Positions 30,101 through 55,600 of a stretch of 64,000 nucleotides of DNA are shown here, piece by piece; position 1 is the first letter of the stretch, and each line of letters begins with the position of its first letter. The stretch covers positions 13,764,001 to 13,828,000 of the forward strand of contig OZ116700.1 in assembly GCA_964199315.1 (NCBI GenBank), in the 5' to 3' direction. The notes below the pieces were generated by a model. The model searched no databases. It worked only from the letters and a program-made list of their open reading frames with translations, and was not told the DNA's origin. This DNA is from Orbicella franksi. Its lineage: Eukaryota. The translations under genes were made by a program, and so were the position numbers.

Positions 30101-33100
30101 CAATGTTAAAACCAGAAACGACCAGAACGCGGGAAAGTATAGTGGTTAACAGTTAGGCGACTAGTTTGCGATACCGAAAATAGATTATTATAGCGGAGCT
30201 CCCACGTTTCGGAGGCGCACGAGTGGAGTCCCATACTTTTGAACATTTGGTAACCCGTGGATCTGAAAATGTTTGTTACGTGATTGTCCATACGTATGTC
30301 CGTACGTCCGTCCATAGTTATTAGTAGGGAGTGTTAGCAATGACGACGACGACGCCGAGGACGAAGCCTTGTAAAAAACGGATTTATGTCGCAACTGTGT
30401 AAATTGGCTCAGTACGCCTACCGGTCTAACAATTTGCTCAGTCTAGATACATCAATCATATAACAAGATCAGTGAACACACCCAACAGATTCCGAATCCA
30501 TTGTCATGGTAAATATATTTTCCTTGTTTCAGCGCGGGTCGATTACAAAAACTTGGTAACATGCCAAGGAGAACGGGTCAAACTCCACTGTGGAAATGCA
30601 AGCTTGGGGCTGACTATCTATTCTGCAAGTTACGGAAGAACATACCCCGGTGATGTCATTTGCCCCTATTACGGAGACGAGAGTGACAAGAATTACAACT
30701 GTGGCGAAAATGACGTTACTGATACATTTAAAACGTTGTGTGAAAGGAAAAATAGATGCAGGGTTAAAGTAAATAGCGCATTGTTTCGAGATCCATGTCC
30801 GGAAAAACACTTGTATCTTACCTTGATTTACTCGTGTGGTAAGTATTTAATACAAATATATTTGAATAGCAGTAAAAGCGACAATCCACCGTAGGAAAAA
30901 GATGGCGGCTGTGCATTTTACCACATTGCCTTGCGAACCTAACACGGCCTAAAAGGCACAAAGAAAGCCAAATTTTTACAATATTTGTCCCTGCACTAAA
31001 GACATTGAGTAGCCTAGGTTTGAAGACTTTATAACGTTTCTGCACGTTTTTATAAACGTTGTTAAGAATTTCATGCGCTGAGAACTATGGGTAAATGTAT
31101 CAGTCGCCACCTTTTTTCCTACGGAGGATTCAGCTGCTACAAAAAATTTTCCATTTCTGAGTGTTACAACGAAAGTCCGAGGAAAATTTCGGGCTTTCAT
31201 TTCGTGATGAAAAATGAGTTATGAAGCCACGAAGAACAGGTCAGCAGTGAGTTAAAATTCATTTACCATGACTTGCTTCCAGGCTTCATAGTTCAATTTG
31301 TAAAGGAGAGGAAGACCTAGGTCCAAATCGCCATGAGGATTGAAAGTTAATTGTTTTCTTATAAATTGCAGTTGCGTTATTCTCGTACTTTGATCCACTT
31401 TTCCTCATGTATGACTGGCACGTTTAATCTTAATGAAAATCTAAAATGCTACTCTGAAAAATAGTTATCATTGAAATAGCTGTTAGGGCAGTCATCAACA
31501 GTTTGACATAGAATTTTTATTTTGACCCTTTCGTCTCGTTATTATGCCTTTAAACAAAAGAACCGCAACAAAAGCTATTAACGTTTTCCCAGTGCACCAG
31601 TTAACAAATAAATAAATAAATAAATAAATAAATATACATTTATATAGAGCCATTTTCCACTAATTGTCCACTAATTGTCCAGTTAACCTTTTGTTTATTA
31701 TGCCTCCATTTGATCGCTAGGAAATGTACTTTTAGCACAAGTTATCATGTTCTAAGTTTTCCTTGTCACACCTATGCATGTGCATCACCATTTTAGTCGA
31801 GTCTTTAATATGTCTTAATGTCAGTTTTTGGCTGCTTCTTAAAGATTGGCAGAAACCAAAGGTCATTCACACGTCCACGTCATCGAGTATCGTAACCACT
31901 ACAACGAGTACTATTCCAGTACCCACTTCCTCCCTGGTCAGCATGTCAAGTTTCTCATCAATAACAATCTTTCCGACAATAGATGTTATCGCATCGACTA
32001 GTTCTGTACTTATGAGTCAGCATACGCCTAATGTTAACGAAACTCCGTCAATTCGAACAACCACCACCAAGGAAGGCGATTTAGGAGTCGACGACGTACT
32101 CGGCTCCGCGACAAAACATGCCGCTGAATCGCTTGGCATTGCAGGCACACTTTTTGTGTGGCTATTATTCATGCAAGGTATTTAAACATAGTTTAACCTT
32201 TGAATCATGAGAGAATGATCTTATCGGAACTTGATAAACATAAAGCAGGTGTCCATGTATGATCTTGTATGGTCTGATCACTTAATTAAAGAAATCGATT
32301 AAGTCATGACTTTGACCGAAATGGGTTCAAGACGTTTAATGTTAAAAATATGTTTATCTCTTTATATAGCAGATATACACCTTAACATATCTTAATAGCC
32401 AAGCGTTTTAAAGGGAATATTGGCCCGGGGTCTTGAAAGTACGGACCGAGCACAGCGACATTCTACTACGGACTCGGGCAATCTTGATCAATAAGATACT
32501 CATACTACGATCGTGATAGAGGGAAAATACCGTGGGATTCAAACACACGACTCAACTAGCTCAACTTTTACACGTAATCATGGCTGACGTTTTCAAAAGT
32601 AAAAGAAAAATTGTTGGATGAGAAAGAAAAGAGATTTTTTTGCGTGTAACTCAATTCTTTTCGAGAAGTAAGCCATAAAATTATAATCGTTCACGGGTCA
32701 TTCCGGGCAGTGCTCGGGTCCAACACTTCAAAAATGTTGGACCGCCACTAGAGCAGTCTGACTGGTTGACTTAAGTTATTAGCCATCTGAATTAACTTAG
32801 TCTTGTAACGATTGGCAGCTGTCAGAGTATTTGCAAATGTCAGCTAAACTGGTTATGTTTCTAAAAAGCAGATAGTTCTTAGAAACATCTAGTCAAAAAA
32901 TTTCAGAAACACTTTCTAATAGATTAGTAAAATGGCGTGTAGTCTAATTCTCATTTGATTTTGCCTGACCCTGACTGGTTGGAAAAAAAATGATTAGTTT
33001 TTTCGCCTTGGTATAGGAAAAGGAAAAATTATCAATCAATGACTAATTCATTCGGCTCTATGAGAAGTGCCTGTAGAGAGTCGTGGTCGTTGTATCCATC

Positions 33101-44569: not shown

Positions 44570-47500
44570 ATGATTATGTTTAATTCTTTAGCGGTGCTTG
44601 CAAGGGTAAGTTGGTGAAATGTTTTCACATGCTTCAGGCTTGAAATGCGGCGCATCTCCTTGTAGCTACAGGTATTTAATCTGCTTGTTTTTGCCTTACC
44701 CAGATTAGCCTTGTGATCCTTGTGCTGATGCTGACCGTCTCGGTTAATAATGGAGGTAAGCTAATGTTATTTTTTGCTTGCATCCCGTCTGAGTAACCTG
44801 GGTTGTCTGTGGTCGTAGCAGCGACCAGCATTATATCAGTTTGCGCGTGGAATTTTAGTTTTCCAAGAGCACAAAATTTGCGAAATCATTTATTTCCCGT
44901 TTAGTGTAACAGTTGAGGCAAATCTGGAAATGAAAGGGCAAAAATATTGCTTTTTTAACTCTCGTCACCTCAATAAATATCGCGAAGCTCGGGGTGATTA
45001 TTAAGTCCGCGCCATACTATTGTGACTTTGATAGTGTTGGGTTTGTGAATGGTTCGAATTCTTTTGAAAAGTTAATTGTACAGTAAGAAAAAACGAGAAA
45101 AATTAGAAAAGCATTGTTAGACAGTGTTTGTGTTAAAATCTGACACTCACTTAGTATCCCTTTCTGGACCGCAAATGTATACAACAAGCTCATCCTCGCG
45201 TGAGTTTCTTGACTGGGAAAAAGGTAAAATAATTCCATTTTTTAAGGAAATATACGACATAGCCCAACAAAATGAATCAGTGTTGCGACCTTCAATAATT
45301 TCCAAAAATGGCAAATGAAAGAAGGCGATGCGAAAGTTGAAAGCCACAAGCGTCTATTGTGAAAACAAACGTGGCTAGATTTGCGATATGAATAATACAA
45401 AAACAAGCATTTTTTTAACCGGATAAAATATGCAATACAGAAATGAGTTGTGTCTGAGCTCAACATGCCCCAAAGAAACTCAACGTGAACTCAACAGGCC
45501 CAACGAGAAATTCAATGGAACCCTAACGAGCTTTCTCAATCGGGCGCATTTTTAAATGAGACGAAAAATTTGAAAACCGTGGTTTTTGAGTTGCTTTCTT
45601 ACTGTCGTTATTACCGATAATTGCTCTTCTTTGTGTTATTTTCATTAACACTTTTCGCGTCAGCTCCATAAGGGAAGTTATTTCCGAATAAAGTCCAATA
45701 ATTACGCAACTTTTGTAAACACGCTTATCCCTCGTTCAGGAATGAACACATCTGTAGGCATTATCGGACGGTCTTTAATTACAGCTAATAAAAAGTCTCT
45801 TTGGGTCTTGTCATATGCTCTGTAGTCAATTCATTTTCTTTACGCTATTTTTAGTAAGAAGAGAAACATTTGCATTAGAAAGCCTTAGTTTCAAAGACGA
45901 AGGTTTTTTAACAAATGTGTGATTCTGTCGTAAGGTTTGAAATTTATATTTTCATAGAATAACGATATCTGTATTCTTTAGTGTTTCTGTTATCCTTCAT
46001 TTGATGTTTAGGAGAATCAAAATTCTCAACACTTGTTTGAAAGTCAGATAATTGATCAGAACCTTTAATTTCTGGAACAACATCCTTTAATATTTTAGAA
46101 CTTTCATTGCTCGGCACGCCTGGATATCCAATTAGAGTTTAACTTGAAGAATTTCCATGAAGTACTCCCACGAAATGTAAAACCATAGCTTTCGAGCATA
46201 AATAACACTTGCTCATCATACATTTTTTATGACAGACACGTACGAAACTGTTTGTAAATGTAAACGCTTGCTAGAATATACGTAGAGTACGAGACCATTC
46301 TCCATAAATTATACGTCACGGTTTGTCTCCAAGCCTGCCGATCCACGAGGGCTGGAAGCAAAGATCACGGGAGAAAATCATCAAGTTATTCTTTTCACCG
46401 CACACGAAGAAGAGCAATTGGTTCGGAAGGAGTTGTTTTTGGCCATAGATGTAAACATCCCTTCACAAAGATCTTGCGGCAATTTTCATGTGGACCCAAA
46501 TTGAACGTCCATAATCAAATGAAAAATGCAAATGGCGTGAAAACAAAGCAGAATGAAATTATATTCTTAACAAAGTCGTCCCCTGGTAGGTAGCGTGTAT
46601 TCTTTCCAGCTGTCTTAACTACTGACATCTTTCAGTGCCAAGGAAAAAAACATCAGTTATTTGTGGAAGAAACAACTTTTTTCCAAACAATGAACCATTT
46701 TCAAATTTCCTCCTTTTTTGATGTCAAAGAATGCCTTTCTTTCAACATGTCGCAGTTCAATTGAAACGTTTAGAATATACTGTGAGTCCTTTAAAGCCAT
46801 TGACTGTGTATCGATAGAAACATGTCAAGTCCGAAAATCGCGCCTAATTATTCAGGGACTGAATTTTCACCATCCCATTTTTTGGAGTAATTAATGGCTT
46901 TCTCATGTGATATTAGCAAAGAATGCCAAAATATATTTTTTGCACATTCCATCTGCTAAAATACTCACTTAAATGTTTTCAGTTGAATGTTTTACTTTCC
47001 TTCATAACGATCAGAATGACGCTGTATTTAGAGATGTTTGTTTTAGAATAGAGAAAACGCGACCGCAACATCTATGAGAATACGCAGAAACCACAATTTG
47101 TTGCAGCTTTTCACCTTTCCTCCAAGTTTGTCACCCGGGTCTCTAAGGGAGCGCAACATACCGATAGCACATGTTCAAAAATTAAAAATGTTGACATGAC
47201 TCCGAGACTTTCTGCCCCAAACAGCCAATTTTCGAAGATTCCTTTCCTTCGGAAAAAATGAGATTTTGGCCGGTATTTTACAAGCTTTCTATAAGTTTAA
47301 ATTTGGAGTGAGTTTCTGTCTCGTCTCCTGATCTCATTAGTACGGACGAGAAAAAGCAAAAGGTTGTCTTCGTATCAAAAGAAAAGTCGTCCTTAGTAGT
47401 CTCGGTATATTTACTGTAGTGCTCTTATGGGATATCGTAACAGAGCTCTGGTTAAGCAGGTCTTCCATCTTAGTACCTTTCAATCTGATATTTCTCAGTT

Positions 47501-50500
47501 CTTCGTAATCCAGTTGCTCTACCCATAATGTACTGTTTAATATCTCTACTAAACAAAGTGTGATGGAAGATTGCAGGGAATGGGGATTGTGATATTTGAC
47601 ATAAATTCCCTTTCTGACTGCTTGCAAGAAACTGATCGTCTCGTTCCGTTTTAGAGGTTCGTATAGAGGACATAGGACGCACGTTCTCCAAGGTCATCTG
47701 CCAAGGAACGACGGTCAAATGGAATTGCAGAAACTCGTCTCTTGCAATGGTTATTTATACTGCTACCTACGGACGTGAGGAGTATGGTGACACTGTCTGT
47801 CCTTTTAAAAAGCCCCTCGTCGATGACTCAGTGATTCAGGCTAATGACACAAACGCCTACTCAAAATGCCCTTTGAAGAATATCACCGTACGGATTATGA
47901 AACTGTGTGACAAGAAAAAGCGTTGTACTGTTACCGCAAATAAAACTTACTTTGGAAATCACTGCAAAGGAGTTTACAAAGTTCTTAAAGTTATTTACGC
48001 CTGTGGTGAGTATTTTTTTAGTTATTAAATTACTACATCTTATTGTCGCTTTTCGACTCATGGCCCAAATTTTCTCTTGGAGTGTGGTGACACAGTACAA
48101 AAAAATGGTAATGCAACAATTTTGTCCACATATTTCCTGAATTTCAAACAGCCTCCTTGGAATCTCCTCTTCTTGTATTCTGTAGCCATCTCTTTAAATT
48201 GTCTCACTTGCAACTTAAGATCCGACCTTTTCTCTCACGATTATACTTCTCTTCTTTCCTTTTTCTTCTTCAGTGAACAAACATGAATTAAAAATCAGGA
48301 CCCTTCCTCTATACACTACAACACCTAGTTACAGCACTACTCCTGTCACTTTATCCACTTCTTCACCCAAAGTAACACCCACACGTAAGAGAGTAACAAC
48401 CTTGACCAAACGAAAAAAAAGTCGCACTAATTCTACTGTTAGAAAGAGTCGAACACGCACAACTAAAGCACCTCAGTCCACAAAGCACACTTCTGGGTCG
48501 AAAACCCTCGCTGAGACAACTTCCAAACTTTCTACTCTATCGTCTACCAATCTATCGACAAAAGCGCCGGTAACGATGACTAACAAGCCCACTAAAGTGA
48601 CACCGACAACGTTACCAATCGTTTCTAAACCGAAAACGACTAAGAAACGCACCCGGGCAACGATCACTGAACCAAAGACGGTAAGTAAAGGTGTCATTAC
48701 GTTGAAACCGAACGTTACGGTCTTAACTTCTGAAGCTAGTGTACCAATAACCATTCCTATTGTGTTAACAAATACAACAATAACCACTGAACGACACCAA
48801 AAGTCTAAGAATCCAACCACGTCCACAGGTGTACCAATCACGATACAAGTGAACTGTACCAACTGCACATTACCAAACGGGACTCTTACCTCCATACCCA
48901 CCACTTTACGACCAATTATACCGACAACTCACAGGGGAGCTTCATCCAAGACAATTTCCAGTGGTGCACCAGAAGTCATGGGGGTGGCAAGACCAGAGGC
49001 CGTCATAGGTGTGTCAGGATCACTTTACCTTTGGTTTCTTCACATGAAAGGTGAGATACGCATATACAAATTACACGTGAATAACGTTAGTGTATTAAGG
49101 GTAGCAACAAGGTTAAGAACACAGAGAATCTAGGATCCTCTTTTATTTGAAGTATTTAGGATTCTCTTGTGCTTGTAGTAAATATCCGTACGCCATAGAA
49201 GTTTTTGAAGTTGCACCTAGCTCTCTGGAATGCTTGGCTTTCTATTCCCATGACAATGCTTGGCCTGCTATTCCCATGACATAATTCGCTTTTTGATGGA
49301 TAGAGCCAGTCGTACTATGGTTGTAGATTCTGGTGTGCGTTGCTAACCTGAGTATCATACTTTTCTTACTCGCGGGGTAGGAGGAGGAAACAACAGGAAT
49401 AACATCGTCAACAAAAACAACAATTACAACATTAATTTGGACCAGAAGATAAAAAGATACCCCGATTAAATAAGGGATACAAAAGATATCCAAGTATTAT
49501 GGACCACAGATATACACTTTTTGAGAAATCAGACAGTGATCTCGCGAATACTTGTCAGTCCAGCAGTTGTCCGGTTTCCTAGTAATTCTCCGATCATTCC
49601 AAGTCATCACTGAGAGCCTACATTCCGATGCGGAACAAATGAAACGTCCTTCAGGTGTTTATCGCATTTTTTTGCAGACGAACAATAGATCACTATTTTA
49701 CAACTTTTGGTTTAATCATTTGCAGACAATTCTTCGACGTACACGACGGTGTTTCTCCTGAGCGCATTGGGAGCAGCAATTATAATGGTGGCAGTTGTAG
49801 CTTGCTTTCTAACCCTCCAGAAAAAGAAGGAATTCCTGAAGCTTGACATAATGCACCAACCCAAAAGATTCATAGCTCCACCCAAGGATACGAAGACAAC
49901 TAACCAGAACGGACATGTCCCCGGAAAAAGTGAGAAATTACCCGACGCGGAGGAAGCACCCGATGGAATGCTTCCAAAAGGACCTGAGGTTGTATTCACC
50001 GCCCATGACGTAAATAATCATGTTCCCAAAGAGTTCAATATCGATAGGTGAGAAACCGAGACTCATTTCATTAATTCTGGGCTTATCGTTTGAAAGACTT
50101 TGGAGTTTGCATCAAAATATCAAGAGTGAAAGGAAAAAAGGAAGAAAAAATCCCCTAATAACATCAAAGGCAAACGAATAACAAATCCAAACGAACAACA
50201 AAGCCAAGAGCGCAACATGTACAGAATGAGATCTTGAGTCGCCAAGTGTTTTTATATCTGTCTGGAGTAAGGAACTATGGTTTTGGGAGGGCGTTTTTGT
50301 CGTAGGGTGACTGTTGCAACTCATCTTATTTGCATTCAGCCGAATCAAAGTAGAGTTTTTCGGGTCGACACCTGATGAAGGTGAAAATGTGTTTGAATGC
50401 AGTTGAAAAAAGTAAATGAGCTATTTAACAAAGCAGCCTCACGTTTTCAGCACATATTTTATTTGTTTATTGGGAATGTTATCTACGATCCCTTTTCACG

Positions 50501-52112
50501 TTCGGGAGCGATAATGCTGCGAGTGATAAATCATTTACATGAGTCAAACAGTGAATAAGATGGGTTCCCAGACATTCATGTTCAAAACTAACTGTTGCTT
50601 AAAAAGTTACACTGTCAAACTCACTGATGAATGCCTTTAAATATTTAAAACAGATATTCTGGTATGGAAAATGGAACAGTGAAGAAAGTCGATGGCACAG
50701 GTATTCATGTCAACCCTCTGTTTAACGGTAGCAATAGTAACAAACCTTCAGGCTCGATCACCAATTCAAACCCAGGTAATCAGCGTGGAAGTGACGCGGT
50801 TTCCAGCCTTCCATCTACTCCATGTCGAAGTCGTACTCTAAGTGAGCCCAGAACCGGGACACCACGACGCGGAAGAGCCAACAGCACCGGTAATGTATCT
50901 CGTAGTCATGAACGGCACCACAGTCAAGGCATGCCTGATTATCCTGACGAGAGAGTACGACTTCCTCGTCACCTCAGCGCTGGAAACGTGTCTCATCACC
51001 ATCGACACGGAACGCAATCAGATCACGCTTTGCAAAGTCAGTCACCCGCAAGAACCCTACCCCGCCAGAGGGCAGCTACAGGAAATGCAGCATATAATCA
51101 ATCGCCCGTGCGAAATCCTCTTAACTGGCCTCCACATGGACAAGCAATACCTGCCAATGGAACATCTAACACTGGGATTATAAGCAACTCCTCGCCAGCG
51201 AGATCGGTTCCAGACGGTACTTTGGTAAATCAGTATCCCACTACAATTGGCAATTTGAACAACAGGCAGCAAAGCCCCGGAGGTGTAACGCAACAGCCAT
51301 CACCCTCTAGAGGTGCACAGTATAACTCTCTTGGTCATACGGTGAAGCAACCCTGGACCACTGGTGAGGCACCCAGCACACCCTCACAAAATTCAGGGTC
51401 ATATCAGCGGGCAAATCCGAACTCCCCAGTGAAATTTTCCAATCCGTCTAATGTAGCATTGGCATCTGACGGCAACGCGGGAACACCAACACCTTACTCG
51501 GCCCATCGGAACACCCCGAAATTAAACAGAAAATGGAGTGAGGAGAAACCGACAAATAATGCTACTCCGAATATAACAACAAACCCAAATTACAACAATA
51601 AACCTAGCGATATTTGGCAGAAGCACAGCGAGTCAGGGCAAAAAGATGGAAGCGGTAAAGGCTTAAGCAGGGACCAAGGGAGCATACCAGGCGGTACTCT
51701 ACAGCGCAGGAATGTTTCTTCTGAAAAATGCTCTCCTCAGGAGCAAGATGCTAAAAAAGGTACGCTGCGACCTCCTAGCACGGGGGAACTTCTTTCCCCT
51801 TTGGATGCTTTGCCAGAAACATACGCAGATAACCCCAGTTTGCGTATATCTGACCGGCATTCTTACAACATCACTCCAGGAACTTCATCTTTTCACCCTT
51901 TCTCGCCTCCGCCCCCAGATTTACCAACAGACAGTTCCGATGATGATCTTTATAGTATCGTAGCGAAAGGCACCTATTCTTCCGCAGCTCCAGATCCTAA
52001 TTTAAGAAAAACCGGTGTGGCTCGGTCTATGTCAGATGGAAGAGAAAGAAAAAGCAAAAACAAACATGTATATGTAGTTATACCGTCAGGAGATGGTTCA
52101 ACCGCAGTGTAG
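44570..52112 (+). CDS. EVA-1/FAM176-like type I membrane lectin B (signal peptide, SUEL lectin, long Thr/Lys-rich mucin stalk, TM, long disordered tail), 998 aa
   Basis: Exons 44570-44605, 44704-44755, 47655-48005, 48274-49050, 49726-50047, 50654-52112 are phase-consistent (2997 nt), with the same phases as paralog A. Eight-Cys SUEL domain (TYGR, NHC), TM VFLLSALGAAIIMVAVVACFL then QKKK, tail ending GSTAV*. Confidence 0.87.
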
Positions 52113-52533
52113 ATATATCTTAACCACAATGGTGGAAGGTGGAAGTCTATCATGAGACTAGACTGGTAATCCCTGAAACAAACAGAAGTTCTCTGTTTTC
52201 GCGTCACAGATTAGAAAACCTAACATGATAATCACAACCAGTATTTTGGGGAGCTCAGTCTAATGTAGGGCCATGAAATAGTTAATTGTAGCGCGCGGCA
52301 ATCATCTTTTGTTATATCTTTATCTCTTTTGGAAGTGGTTTATGTCTTAGGGTTCTGGGTTCTAATGTACTGAAGCTGTTCTAACTACTCTGGGGGTGGA
52401 GGAATATTTCTGTATCTTTGACTTGCACTTTTTCTGCTTTGACTGTTCTTTCCTATCATTCTCTACATAACCTCTTTACTAACACAGTGAAACCTAACTG
52501 TGTAGCTGACGGTGTTTTGTTTACTTACTTCAG

Positions 52534-52670
52534 AGGTAGGAAATGCCAATGATAGCAATGCTGATGCTCTTGAACCACAGAATGCCTCGGAAAATTCTGT
52601 CATGGACAAAATTTTGGGACTGCCTCGATTATTGTTCGGAAAAAGAGAACGGGAACTGCCAACAGAATAA
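52534..52670 (+). other. Orphan phase-1 terminal exon (VGNAND...MDKILGLPRLLFGKRERELPTE*)
   Basis: Acceptor ttttgtttacttacttcag with a ctgac branch-like site about 25 nt upstream. Only phase 1 is open (45 codons to TAA). Confidence 0.45.
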
Positions 52671-55600
52671 CGTTGATCACGGAGTTACAGTGTAAAACAC
52701 AGTGGAGACAGATACAGTGTAATTTCTAACAAACGACATTTACTGCTCCGCTATAAAGACTACTAATCCTTTATGACAAGTAAGCAGGAAATCCCCTAAA
52801 ATCACAGACGATAGTCAGCAAGTACATTAACGAAAAGTTAACATGACAATGGAAAGGAAGGTCAAAGGGTGAATCAAAGAACGCGAAGCAGAAAAGATCG
52901 GCTATTTACTCTAACAGTCTGAAACGGACCTTAAGATAGAAATGGGCCTGCATTGGACTGAGTATTCACAAGTAGCGGATGTTAAAATTGCCATGTCGTA
53001 ATTTATAGATTGGAAGCTGCTTCTTCAGTGTTATTTAAAGTCTATAGCTTTAGGGGAGAATATTTATCAAAGGAGAATATTTGCCAAATTGAGACTGATA
53101 GCTGTAACGTTAAAAGTTTCTTTGATTGTGGTGGAATTCGGTAGATACCTTCTTCTGGGACTTTATCAGGGAAAAAAATGTTCAAAACGACAAAACTCAG
53201 AAGTAGCTCCCACATGACCCAGCAAAATGAATTTTGAATAGAGAACATTTCGACAGAAGTGATGTAGCTGTAAGAGAATATAAAACTTAGGCCATAGTGT
53301 AATCTACAGACGTACTACCTGTGTCAGATGGAAACCTTTTTGAGCAGTTTAGCTCTGTTATCCCTTAGAGTACGAGGCTTAAATTACTTTCATATTTAAG
53401 TCTACAATACTTGATCGTTCTTCTCATCAGTATTCACTGAAACGGCCACGTGATGTTTTATTTACAGACTCAAAACTTTAGCCACTTGTACAGCATAATA
53501 AACAGTACCACCAAGAGAGGATGAGTGGTAAGATAGACCATATTCCCAAGGTGATCCCTCACAAGTAATGTTTAGATCAATTCCGGTATCAGAAATCCCG
53601 GGAGAGTATAGCAATAGCCAATCTTGTGAAGCAGATTTTGTTCACCTGTGCAGCTCAAGCAACTTTACATTCGTTTTCATACCTTTCCACCGCCCCCTCC
53701 TAAAACGAGCCCACAATGCGCATGGGTGCTGAAAATGACTGGCCATTGTCTAAAAATATCTCGAGAGGATTATGTTGGGAGAAAGGCCTTTATAGAGATT
53801 AACTCTGTTACCCTTTATTCTCTCTTGGTACTACTCAAAAGCAATCATTTGATCAGGCCACATACTGGGGTTTTATTCACGTGCGTACTAGACACGAGGT
53901 CGATTCTGGGAGAGAAAGGTTCAAAAATTGTTTTAATAATGTGCAAATAGAGTAACGCAACAATTAAGGGCATTACGTGAACGTGAAGTCTACGTCTCCC
54001 TACTTTTCTTGCGAGGACTACCTCGTCTGAAGCAGATATCCAAAAAATTGTCAAGGCGATGGTTTCTTGTCACCTCGTCTGTTTAACGCTCCATTGCAAT
54101 TAGGAAAATTTGAATGTTTCTTGTGGGGACACTCTTATGGGGACAGGCCTCGACCACTTACAAGGACTGCGTCCCATCGGCGAATTATGGGGACATGTTT
54201 ATGAACGCCAAATAACTACCGACCGATAATATACATATATGACACTACTCGATTCTGATTGGTTCAGCGAAGTCCCAGTGCAACACCAGTGCAAAGAGCG
54301 GTTGTTTCATTAATTGTCCAGAGTTTGGACAAACAATAGCGTGAATCTAATTTGTAACGATTATGTGTGTAGTGATTATGTGAAAAAACAATCAGGAGTG
54401 CATTCTGTTATATTTCCATGCTTTGATCTTGGCAAGCTTTCTGGAACACTAACTAATCTGCTGTTAAGGGCGAAAAATTGCTTTCTCAAAAACAAACATT
54501 CCCATTCTTGTGAGGATTCAAGATGTGTATTCTACAGACCAACCGGCTTCTGCAGACTTCTCAGAAGTCCCCTTGAAATAGGTCTACTTGAAAATAATTA
54601 TTAATTTAAGGGATCTTTTTCAGGGAACCCGAAACCCTCGCAATCCCCACAGAGCTGGTGTGGTTTTATACACAACTTTGCGATTTGTTTCTGCCCCCAA
54701 ACTGAAGTAAATTGTATAAACACCACTTTTCAGAGGTCAGAGTAAGTTGGTAAAGTGGTCAGCCCATCTAAGACATGATTTTTTAGTTCATTCCCTTTAG
54801 AGTATTAGACCAATTGAACAGATAAATATTACATGGAATTATTTTCAGGATGTCTGAAAAAAGCTGGCCATTGATGTAATTTATATTGCTTAAGTATCTA
54901 CAAAGCCGGTGGATACTAATCTCTTGCATTTGTAAACGAAGTCACTATAGTTTAACGAAAAATCGACATAGTGGCCGGCCAACGGGTGTTTATATAATTT
55001 TGGATCGACTCTAAGGATATGCTATTGTACTTGTAATATAACGATGAAGCGCGAATTCGAATATTAAATAGGTCAGCAATTCGTACGTGTGATACAGATG
55101 CCATGTAAAATTTAGTCATCTGATAGTAAAATCCCAAAATGTTCTCATGGCACATGGCTCAATTCCATTTTCACACGCACGCATTGCGGACGTACTTTTG
55201 TGCAAATAGCTAACGTACGTGAATGACTACCTTGTCTGCAACGTATGCGTAAAAAATCTTAATGATCTTCTTCTTAGTCTTATGAAACACTAATTAAAAT
55301 GTAGAAGCATAAGGTCTTCACGTCCACAATTCTGATAATATTCCGGGCAGTCTGGTCAGGCTAATAGATAAACGATTGTAATTCAACCATATTGTAATGA
55401 CCGTTTGCAGCTAAAACGACGATAAAAGGCAAATATTAAATGGATTTAGCCTTCTACGTTGTTGACCCTAACTTAGGGAGTTAAGCTAAACTCGCGGTGG
55501 CATAAAACTAGACAATTACTGATTTCAGCTTTCAAAACGATAAAGCTAGGTTTTACAAAAGTTAAGCGCAAAGCAATTTTATACAGATCTAAGCCATGGT

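Follow-up and report, generated by a model that had tools for sequence, protein, structure and literature searches.

A putative alternative last coding exon, conserved among corals, lies behind the stop codon of a SUEL-lectin receptor gene

Within the window, by which we mean the whole 64-kb stretch of Orbicella franksi DNA that was analysed, positions 52534-52670 are best explained as a conserved alternative last coding exon of a single-pass SUEL-lectin receptor gene (lectin B), expressed as two mRNA forms that differ by a tail swap. We put the probability of this reading at about 0.8. In the long form, positions 51760-52533 are kept, translation ends at 52112 (...DGSTAV), and 52534-52670 belong to the 3' UTR. 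In the short form, the weak donor at 51759 (AAG/GTACGC, phase 1; the slash marks the exon boundary here and below) would be spliced to 52534, and the protein would lose its last 117 residues and gain a glutamate plus 45 residues that include the core MDKILGLPRxLFG. Both tail ends would be cytoplasmic, making this a receptor tail swap and not a secreted propeptide. RNA of this species shows the long form; from Acropora cDNAs we infer the removal of 51760-52533, and with it the use of 51759>52534 in this species.

A coherent spliced frame runs from the ATG at 44570 through the signal, lectin, stalk, transmembrane and tail exons (Table 1). The translation of the two signal-peptide exons (MIMFNSLAVLAR / ISLVILVLMLTVSVNNG) matches the N-termini of the related proteins P0019 and P0006 by sequence comparison. 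The lectin domain matches PF02140 with an E value of 7e-13 and 49.2 bits (curated cut-off, 31.4), and the orthologues score 41.9-53.1 bits against the same family. In the long form the last exon codes for 482 residues of tail, for which a Pfam scan returned no family at E up to 0.1; in four full-length relatives, one SUEL domain and no other domain was found. The end of the long form is conserved at the same point in other proteins, reading -DGSTAV in P0001, P0015 and P0019, -TAV in P0011 and -LTKV in P0002. The drop of read depth in the last bin suggests that the long-form mRNA ends near the AATAAA listed in Table 1.

Table 1 Features of the lectin B gene and of its putative alternative tail in the window.
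Feature	Positions	Strand	Evidence or remark
Start codon and two small predicted signal-peptide exons	44570-44755	+	Second exon ends in phase-1 donor 44755
SUEL (rhamnose/galactose-binding) lectin domain exon	47654-48005	+	Pfam PF02140; RNA junction 48005>48829; tblastn with P0019
Stalk exon	48829-49050	+	RNA junctions 48005>48829 and 49050>49726; GT..AG
Exon with single transmembrane helix (VFLLSALGAAIIMVAVVACFLTL) and start of cytoplasmic tail	49726-50047	+	RNA contig and reads; GT..AG
Coding part of large terminal exon, long isoform	50654-52112	+	Disordered tail ...VVIPSGDGSTAV; stop 52110-52112
Internal phase-1 donor AAAAAG/GTACGC	51754-51767	+	Exon end 51759, GT 51760-51761, inside Lys-Gly-Thr codons
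Optional intron, 774 nt	51760-52533	+	GT..AG; last 117 long-form codons, stop and 421 nt of 3' UTR
3' UTR of long-form mRNA	52113-53520 (end approximate)	+	AATAAA 53497-53502; continuous RNA contig; read-depth fall
Branch-point-like CTGACGG (52506-52512), pyrimidine tract and acceptor AG (52532-52533)	52506-52533	+	All kept in L007, L009 and L011; L010 keeps the tract and the acceptor
Putative alternative terminal coding exon	52534-52670	+	45 full codons plus split Glu codon; stop 52668-52670
Conserved core SVMDKILGLPRLLFGK of the alternative C-terminus	52596-52643	+	Alignments with other lineages
Eight-codon read-through extension RERELPTE	52644-52667	+	Lineage-specific, +8 residues; alignment with other lineages

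The sequence-only reading had singled out a good acceptor behind the lectin B stop that opens a frame with Gly-Lys-Arg (GKR), and the sequence bears out this layout: an acceptor at 52533/52534, an open frame ...SVMDKILGLPRLLFGKRERELPTE-stop and an end at 52670. The acceptor lies 421 nt past the stop at 52110-52112 and consists of a pyrimidine-rich tract followed by ...acttacttcag/AG (cag at 52531-52533). Read in phase 1 from 52534, the stretch gives (E)VGNANDSNADALEPQNASENSVMDKILGLPRLLFGKRERELPTE and a TAA at 52668-52670. An exon of this kind with a Gly-dibasic pattern is, taken alone, not beyond chance: among the open frames of the 64-kb window, 540 have at least 45 codons and 32 of these contain G[KR][KR], and at three acceptor-like sites a run of at least 40 open codons that includes a Gly-dibasic motif comes next. 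It is because of conservation across lineages, and not because of GKR, that 52534-52670 stands above this background. The stretch is single copy in its own genome, where the tail, the 3' UTR and the small open frame, each used as a query, returned the locus itself and nothing else.

An alternative tail exon is most directly recognized where both forms of the mRNA are documented, and this is the case in Acropora. An exhaustive profile-free search with the tail yielded 13 relatives. Acropora muricata isoform X5 (P0003, XP_067050057.1) follows the tail to window Lys365 and then reads NASK/EVGNSKDILDDVQPKNSSEISVMDKILGLSRALFG, an ending that, judged by sequence, is clearly the homologue of the 52534 exon. 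A. muricata isoform X2 (P0015, XP_067050054.1) reads ...NASK/GTLRAPS...DGSTAV, and the split between NASK/GTLR... and NASK/EVGN... falls exactly at window 51759. There the window reads GCT AAA AAA G/GT ACG CTG, and the exon-final G joined to the AG of 52534-52535 gives a Glu codon and the protein ...QEQDAKK-E-VGNAND..., which is the exact Acropora pattern. The junction is expressed in Acropora: RefSeq X5 and two cDNA contigs of independent origin contain it, and the long X2 exists beside them. One of these (L004, an intron-free JGI contig of 2840 nt) is regarded as cDNA because its frame of 738 residues, ending TTC GGT TAA TAA, is uninterrupted; the other (the source of P0017, an intron-free JGI contig of 1220 nt, independent of L004) has the same donor-exon junction. 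Protein searches with the exon, which covered cluster representatives in a collection without proteins of this species, found the Acropora full-length forms, one unspliced genomic open frame (P0030) and no others.

Like the window gene, the A. muricata X5/X2 gene encodes a signal peptide, one SUEL domain, a transmembrane helix and a long tail, with the same split between Lys / Gly-Thr and Lys / Glu-Val-Gly-Asn, the core SVMDKILGL-R-LFG and the long end -DGSTAV. The two differ in that tail identity is only about 42%, that the Acropora short form stops right after LFG (TAA) whereas the window continues GKRERELPTE, and that RNA evidence for the junction exists for Acropora but not, at about 3-6x depth, for the window species. 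Judged by these comparisons, the window gene has its orthologue in an Acropora gene that is uncharacterised and was annotated automatically, and the exon is already modelled in the RefSeq annotation of a relative (A. muricata X5).

A terminal coding exon is expected to keep its splice signals, a compatible phase and an open frame with in-frame indels, and all of these are found. The relatives' genomic loci were retrieved via the tail proteins, and the same open frame is present in five other coral lineages, four of them seen as genomic DNA, in each case downstream of the long-form stop. The exon lies 466 nt past that stop in L007/L008 (EVQNSLGELQPKKASEISFMDKILGLPRTLFGK-TGA; tail identity to the window, 60%), 470 nt past it in L011 (...DNLDDVQPKNSSEISFIDKILGLPRSLFGK-TGA), 449 nt in L009 (EVENPQDGQSGPLQSRNATGTSFLEKIAVVPRLLFGK-TGA; tail identity, 45%) and about 1135 nt in L010 (...FKEMVIEKVGQLPQLLTGD-TAA; tail identity, 34%). 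All four genomes have a phase-1 donor in a Lys/Gln-Gly codon (AAAG/GTACG, or CAAG/GTATGC in L010) and a pyrimidine tract with a CAG/AG acceptor; in three of the four (L007, L009 and L011), a CTGACGG lies about 25 nt 5' of the acceptor. Against L009, the most distant well-aligned genome in the identity-island comparison, identity is 0.66-0.76 in the exon; in the intron it is 0.30-0.48, and downstream 0.28-0.50. Indels within the exon are of 12 and 3 nt and in frame, and those just outside are of 4-6 nt. Pairwise dN/dS for the exon is 0.25-0.64 on 31-36 codons, only moderately below 1; constraint is concentrated in the C-terminal half, and the N-terminal half is poorly conserved. The core is identical to Acropora at 13 of 15 residues and reads SFIDKILGLPRSLFGK in P0030 and MVIEKVGQLPQLLTGD in L010. 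The frame is open in six lineages (the window and the five others), with stops within two codons of each other. When JGI metagenome contigs were searched with the degenerate DNA pattern for VMDKILGLxRxLFG, two contigs were found, both from the same species as the window. Thus, the earlier proposal that 52534 opens a real exon with a working-type acceptor is upheld by a frame and splice signals kept in other coral lineages, and its phase-1 acceptor is matched by a phase-1 donor, as the frame requires.

That proposal had also offered, as one of two models, an internal donor that yields an alternative-tail receptor isoform in which GKR is incidental. This was correct in kind but not in position: at the donor it named, CAG/gtaatc at 50775, no junction was seen and no homologue splits, and the Acropora isoform, the cDNAs and the conservation point to 51759. 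The tail of P0006/P0009 departs near residue 62, and not at residue 37, the position of 50775. Compared with the gene's three constitutive donors (GTGAGT, GTGAGA and GTGAGA), GTACGC at 51759 is a weak donor, which fits default retention of 51760-52533.

RNA from this species was mapped over 47700-53650, so that donor 44755 is covered only indirectly. The raw reads number 126 (91 from X23 and 35 from X24, a 24-25% sample of two polyA runs; X21 contributed 0), giving a depth of about 3-6, with junctions listed from 3 reads upward. A polyA contig of 4790 nt (X1) aligns to 47700-48004, 48828-49048, 49724-50045 and then unbroken to 50652-53650. The X23/X24 reads show the same three GT..AG junctions and span 52078-52475 at a low depth (about 2-4) equal to that of the flanks. 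Thus, 50654 to at least 53650 forms one terminal exon, 51760-52533 is retained in the main mRNA, and 52534-52670 is 3' UTR there. Neither a junction into 52534 nor a loose end at that position was seen in X1 or X23/X24, and no read or contig joins 51759 to 52534, at a number of reads with which a minor isoform is undetectable. The question of which donor joins 52534 in RNA is therefore answered in part: the junction found in Acropora mRNA uses the equivalent of 51759, and none was seen in this species. Two variants fall within the exon. A common one at 52604 (ATG>ATA) changes the Met of MDK to Ile, the residue that L011 has there, and another at 52619 is synonymous.

The other earlier model held that a donor in the extracellular part of the gene (44755, 48005 or 49050) joins 52534, skips the transmembrane exon and yields a secreted precursor that releases ...LLF-NH2. 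A glycine ahead of a dibasic site is the classical signal for amidation, and the three donors are indeed phase 1 and in frame with 52534. The exons at 47654 and 52534 both start AG/AGGT... in phase 1, with Glu-Val, and because of this shared start all phase-1 donors are formally compatible with 52534. However, 48005 and 49050 are joined only to 48829 and 49726, without a loose end at 52534, and every known transcript with the exon joins it to the cytoplasmic tail, following the transmembrane exon and at least 365 tail residues. Prohormone convertases, like the amidating enzyme, work within the lumen of the secretory pathway, and a cytoplasmic site is therefore out of reach of the amidating enzymes. 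Nor is there a cleavage site on the N-terminal side of the supposed peptide (no basic pair upstream within the 45 codons), and it is present in one copy only, with no relatives of this kind in the genome. The likeness to precursors of amidated neuropeptides or antimicrobial peptides consists of a hydrophobic peptide followed by Gly-Lys-Arg, in this species only; unlike those precursors, the exon's product does not enter the secretory lumen, and it lacks a conserved dibasic site, an N-terminal cleavage site and repeats.

If GKR served processing, it would be expected in the relatives, and it is absent from all five other lineages, in which the MDKILGLPRxLFG core is conserved. At 52644-52646, the AGA that encodes the GKR arginine stands where three lineages have a TGA stop. 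These read GK-TGA, Acropora reads G-TAA one codon earlier, and L010 reads GD-TAA. Two independent contigs of the window's species (L005 and L006) also have AGA. By this alignment, the Arg is a lineage-specific stop loss: an ancestral TGA after ...LFGK changed to AGA, and the frame gained eight sense codons up to the next stop. GKR is not an amidation or processing signal of the neuropeptide type. The amidated-peptide reading is rejected on the very points that its proposal had named as decisive, namely that no such junction was seen and that GKR is unconserved, and we give it practically no credence.

A different objection to the tail-swap reading is that the exon is used in relatives and lost or negligible in this species, so that 52534-52670 would be 3' UTR only and its frame a decaying relic. 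Consistent with this, only the unspliced form was seen at the depth reached, the ancestral stop has been lost with a gain of eight sense codons, and the common variant alters a Met codon. Yet the donor, the branch-like motif, the pyrimidine tract, the acceptor and the frame are all intact in the window, the core retains its near-identity to Acropora, the Met>Ile change is conservative and matches another lineage, and the read depth is too low for a minor isoform. We consider a relic unlikely, although the read-through extension could reflect relaxed C-terminal constraint in this lineage. Conservation might instead act at the RNA level, for instance through a 3' UTR element that serves regulation or localisation, since the window and the Acropora cDNA share an identical stretch of 27 nt (TCTGTCATGGACAAAATTTTGGGACTG), third codon positions included. 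Such an element would not by itself account for a frame that is open in six lineages with in-frame indels and clustered stops, nor for splice signals that flank the conserved block, and in Acropora mRNAs the block is translated as a C-terminus. RNA and coding roles are not exclusive, but as the sole explanation a non-coding element appears highly improbable.

The part of the tail that the swap would remove contains conserved blocks. Alignment of the last 117 residues of the long form reveals GELLSPLDALP, F(S/P)PPPP followed by D-SSDDD-LYSIVAKGTYSS, and a C-terminal -STAV; positions 51930-52109 encode the conserved FHPF(S/P)PPPP, DSSDDDLYSIVAKGTYSS and -DGSTAV, and a YSIV tyrosine motif is present. 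By motif pattern only, F(S/P)PPPP resembles what we take to be an EVH1 ligand, the acidic run with YSIV presumably resembles an acidic-cluster plus endocytic YxxPhi sorting signal, and the -STAV end resembles, on our assumption, a class I PDZ ligand. From these patterns we infer that the tail switch would change the cytoskeletal, trafficking or scaffold coupling of the receptor. More tentatively, the swap of the three interaction motifs (FPPPP-like, acidic-YSIV and -STAV) for MDKILGLPRxLFG, a 13-residue motif not described before and conserved at or near the C-terminus in six coral lineages, may be a regulated switch between two signalling or trafficking states of a glycan-sensing receptor, with the donor kept weak by the double duty of the Lys-Gly-Thr codons; we regard this as possible and not as the likelier case. 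The switch might act in microbe or symbiont recognition.

The mechanism is ordinary alternative splicing (an alternative last exon with a tail swap) and not a new kind. In GluN1, a subunit of the NMDA receptor, the alternative last exons C2/C2' exchange C-terminal tails. Similarly, an optional splice in the last coding region would here exchange the cytoplasmic C-terminus, a C-terminal S/T-x-V PDZ-type ligand would be gained or lost, and the unused version would be 3' UTR or intron; in contrast to GluN1, which is unrelated in sequence, it is the unspliced form that carries the PDZ-type end. Exitrons are introns within protein-coding exons, and the optional intron resembles them in that its donor lies inside the coding sequence of a long exon for a disordered protein, with retention as the default and splicing optional. 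It differs from them in crossing the stop into the 3' UTR, which changes the C-terminus without an internal deletion.

A tempting false lead, a neuropeptide-like amide in a receptor locus, is thereby replaced by a corrected gene model, that of a coral SUEL-lectin receptor with two cytoplasmic tails, the choice between which appears to have been kept across six coral lineages. For annotators, this means that a conserved open frame found 0.4-1.1 kb beyond the stop codon, in what passes for 3' UTR, may turn out to be a tail-swap exon whose donor is buried in coding sequence. For coral biology, it would provide two defined isoforms of an uncharacterised lectin receptor that can be compared for partners or localisation.

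A literature search returned nothing on the lectin B gene. Like EVA-1/EVA1C and latrophilin/Cirl, its product is a membrane protein that carries a SUEL/rhamnose-binding lectin domain at the N-terminal end. Members of the EVA1/FAM176 family have two SUEL domains and a conserved EVA1 cytoplasmic domain, and membership was rejected, as only one lectin domain and no FAM176/EVA1 tail domain was found with Pfam. Latrophilin/Cirl adhesion GPCRs have a GAIN/GPS domain and seven transmembrane helices, and this assignment was likewise rejected, as the full-length orthologues have no GAIN or seven-helix Pfam match and a single hydrophobic helix. One Acropora digitifera isoform is named 'latrophilin Cirl-like', a name that by these comparisons draws its support from the lectin domain alone.

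Several minor observations concern the same locus. A second SUEL lectin exon ('lectin A') lies at 30556-30858 and is 29-38% identical to 47654-48005; neither the tail nor the 3' UTR of lectin B has a counterpart in its gene, and this upstream paralogue therefore offers no comparison. In P0006/P0009, the tail passes from around residue 62 straight into the DSSDDD block, and the Logan-derived P0023/P0024 (from the species of L007) have a 26-residue gap in the disordered tail; these gaps are due either to splicing of the exitron type or to deletions in the genome. Where the lectin gene probably ends, or shortly beyond, 53460-53960 is a dispersed repeat with at least 50 genome copies at 70-90% identity, which explains the X1 contig depth of about 2500 in the last bin. 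Within the intron 49051-49725, a 221-nt X1 contig with a depth of 53 matches 49343-49390 over 41 nt and has a 117-nt loose end; it is possibly a repeat or a fragment of an unrelated transcript. Directly 5' of the stalk exon, positions 48267-48828 hold a Ser/Thr/Pro/Lys-rich (mucin-like) open frame that matches residues 144-389 of P0009, with small X1 contigs over 48560-48820. The stretch probably lengthens the stalk exon optionally at its 5' end and gives an isoform with a longer ectodomain.
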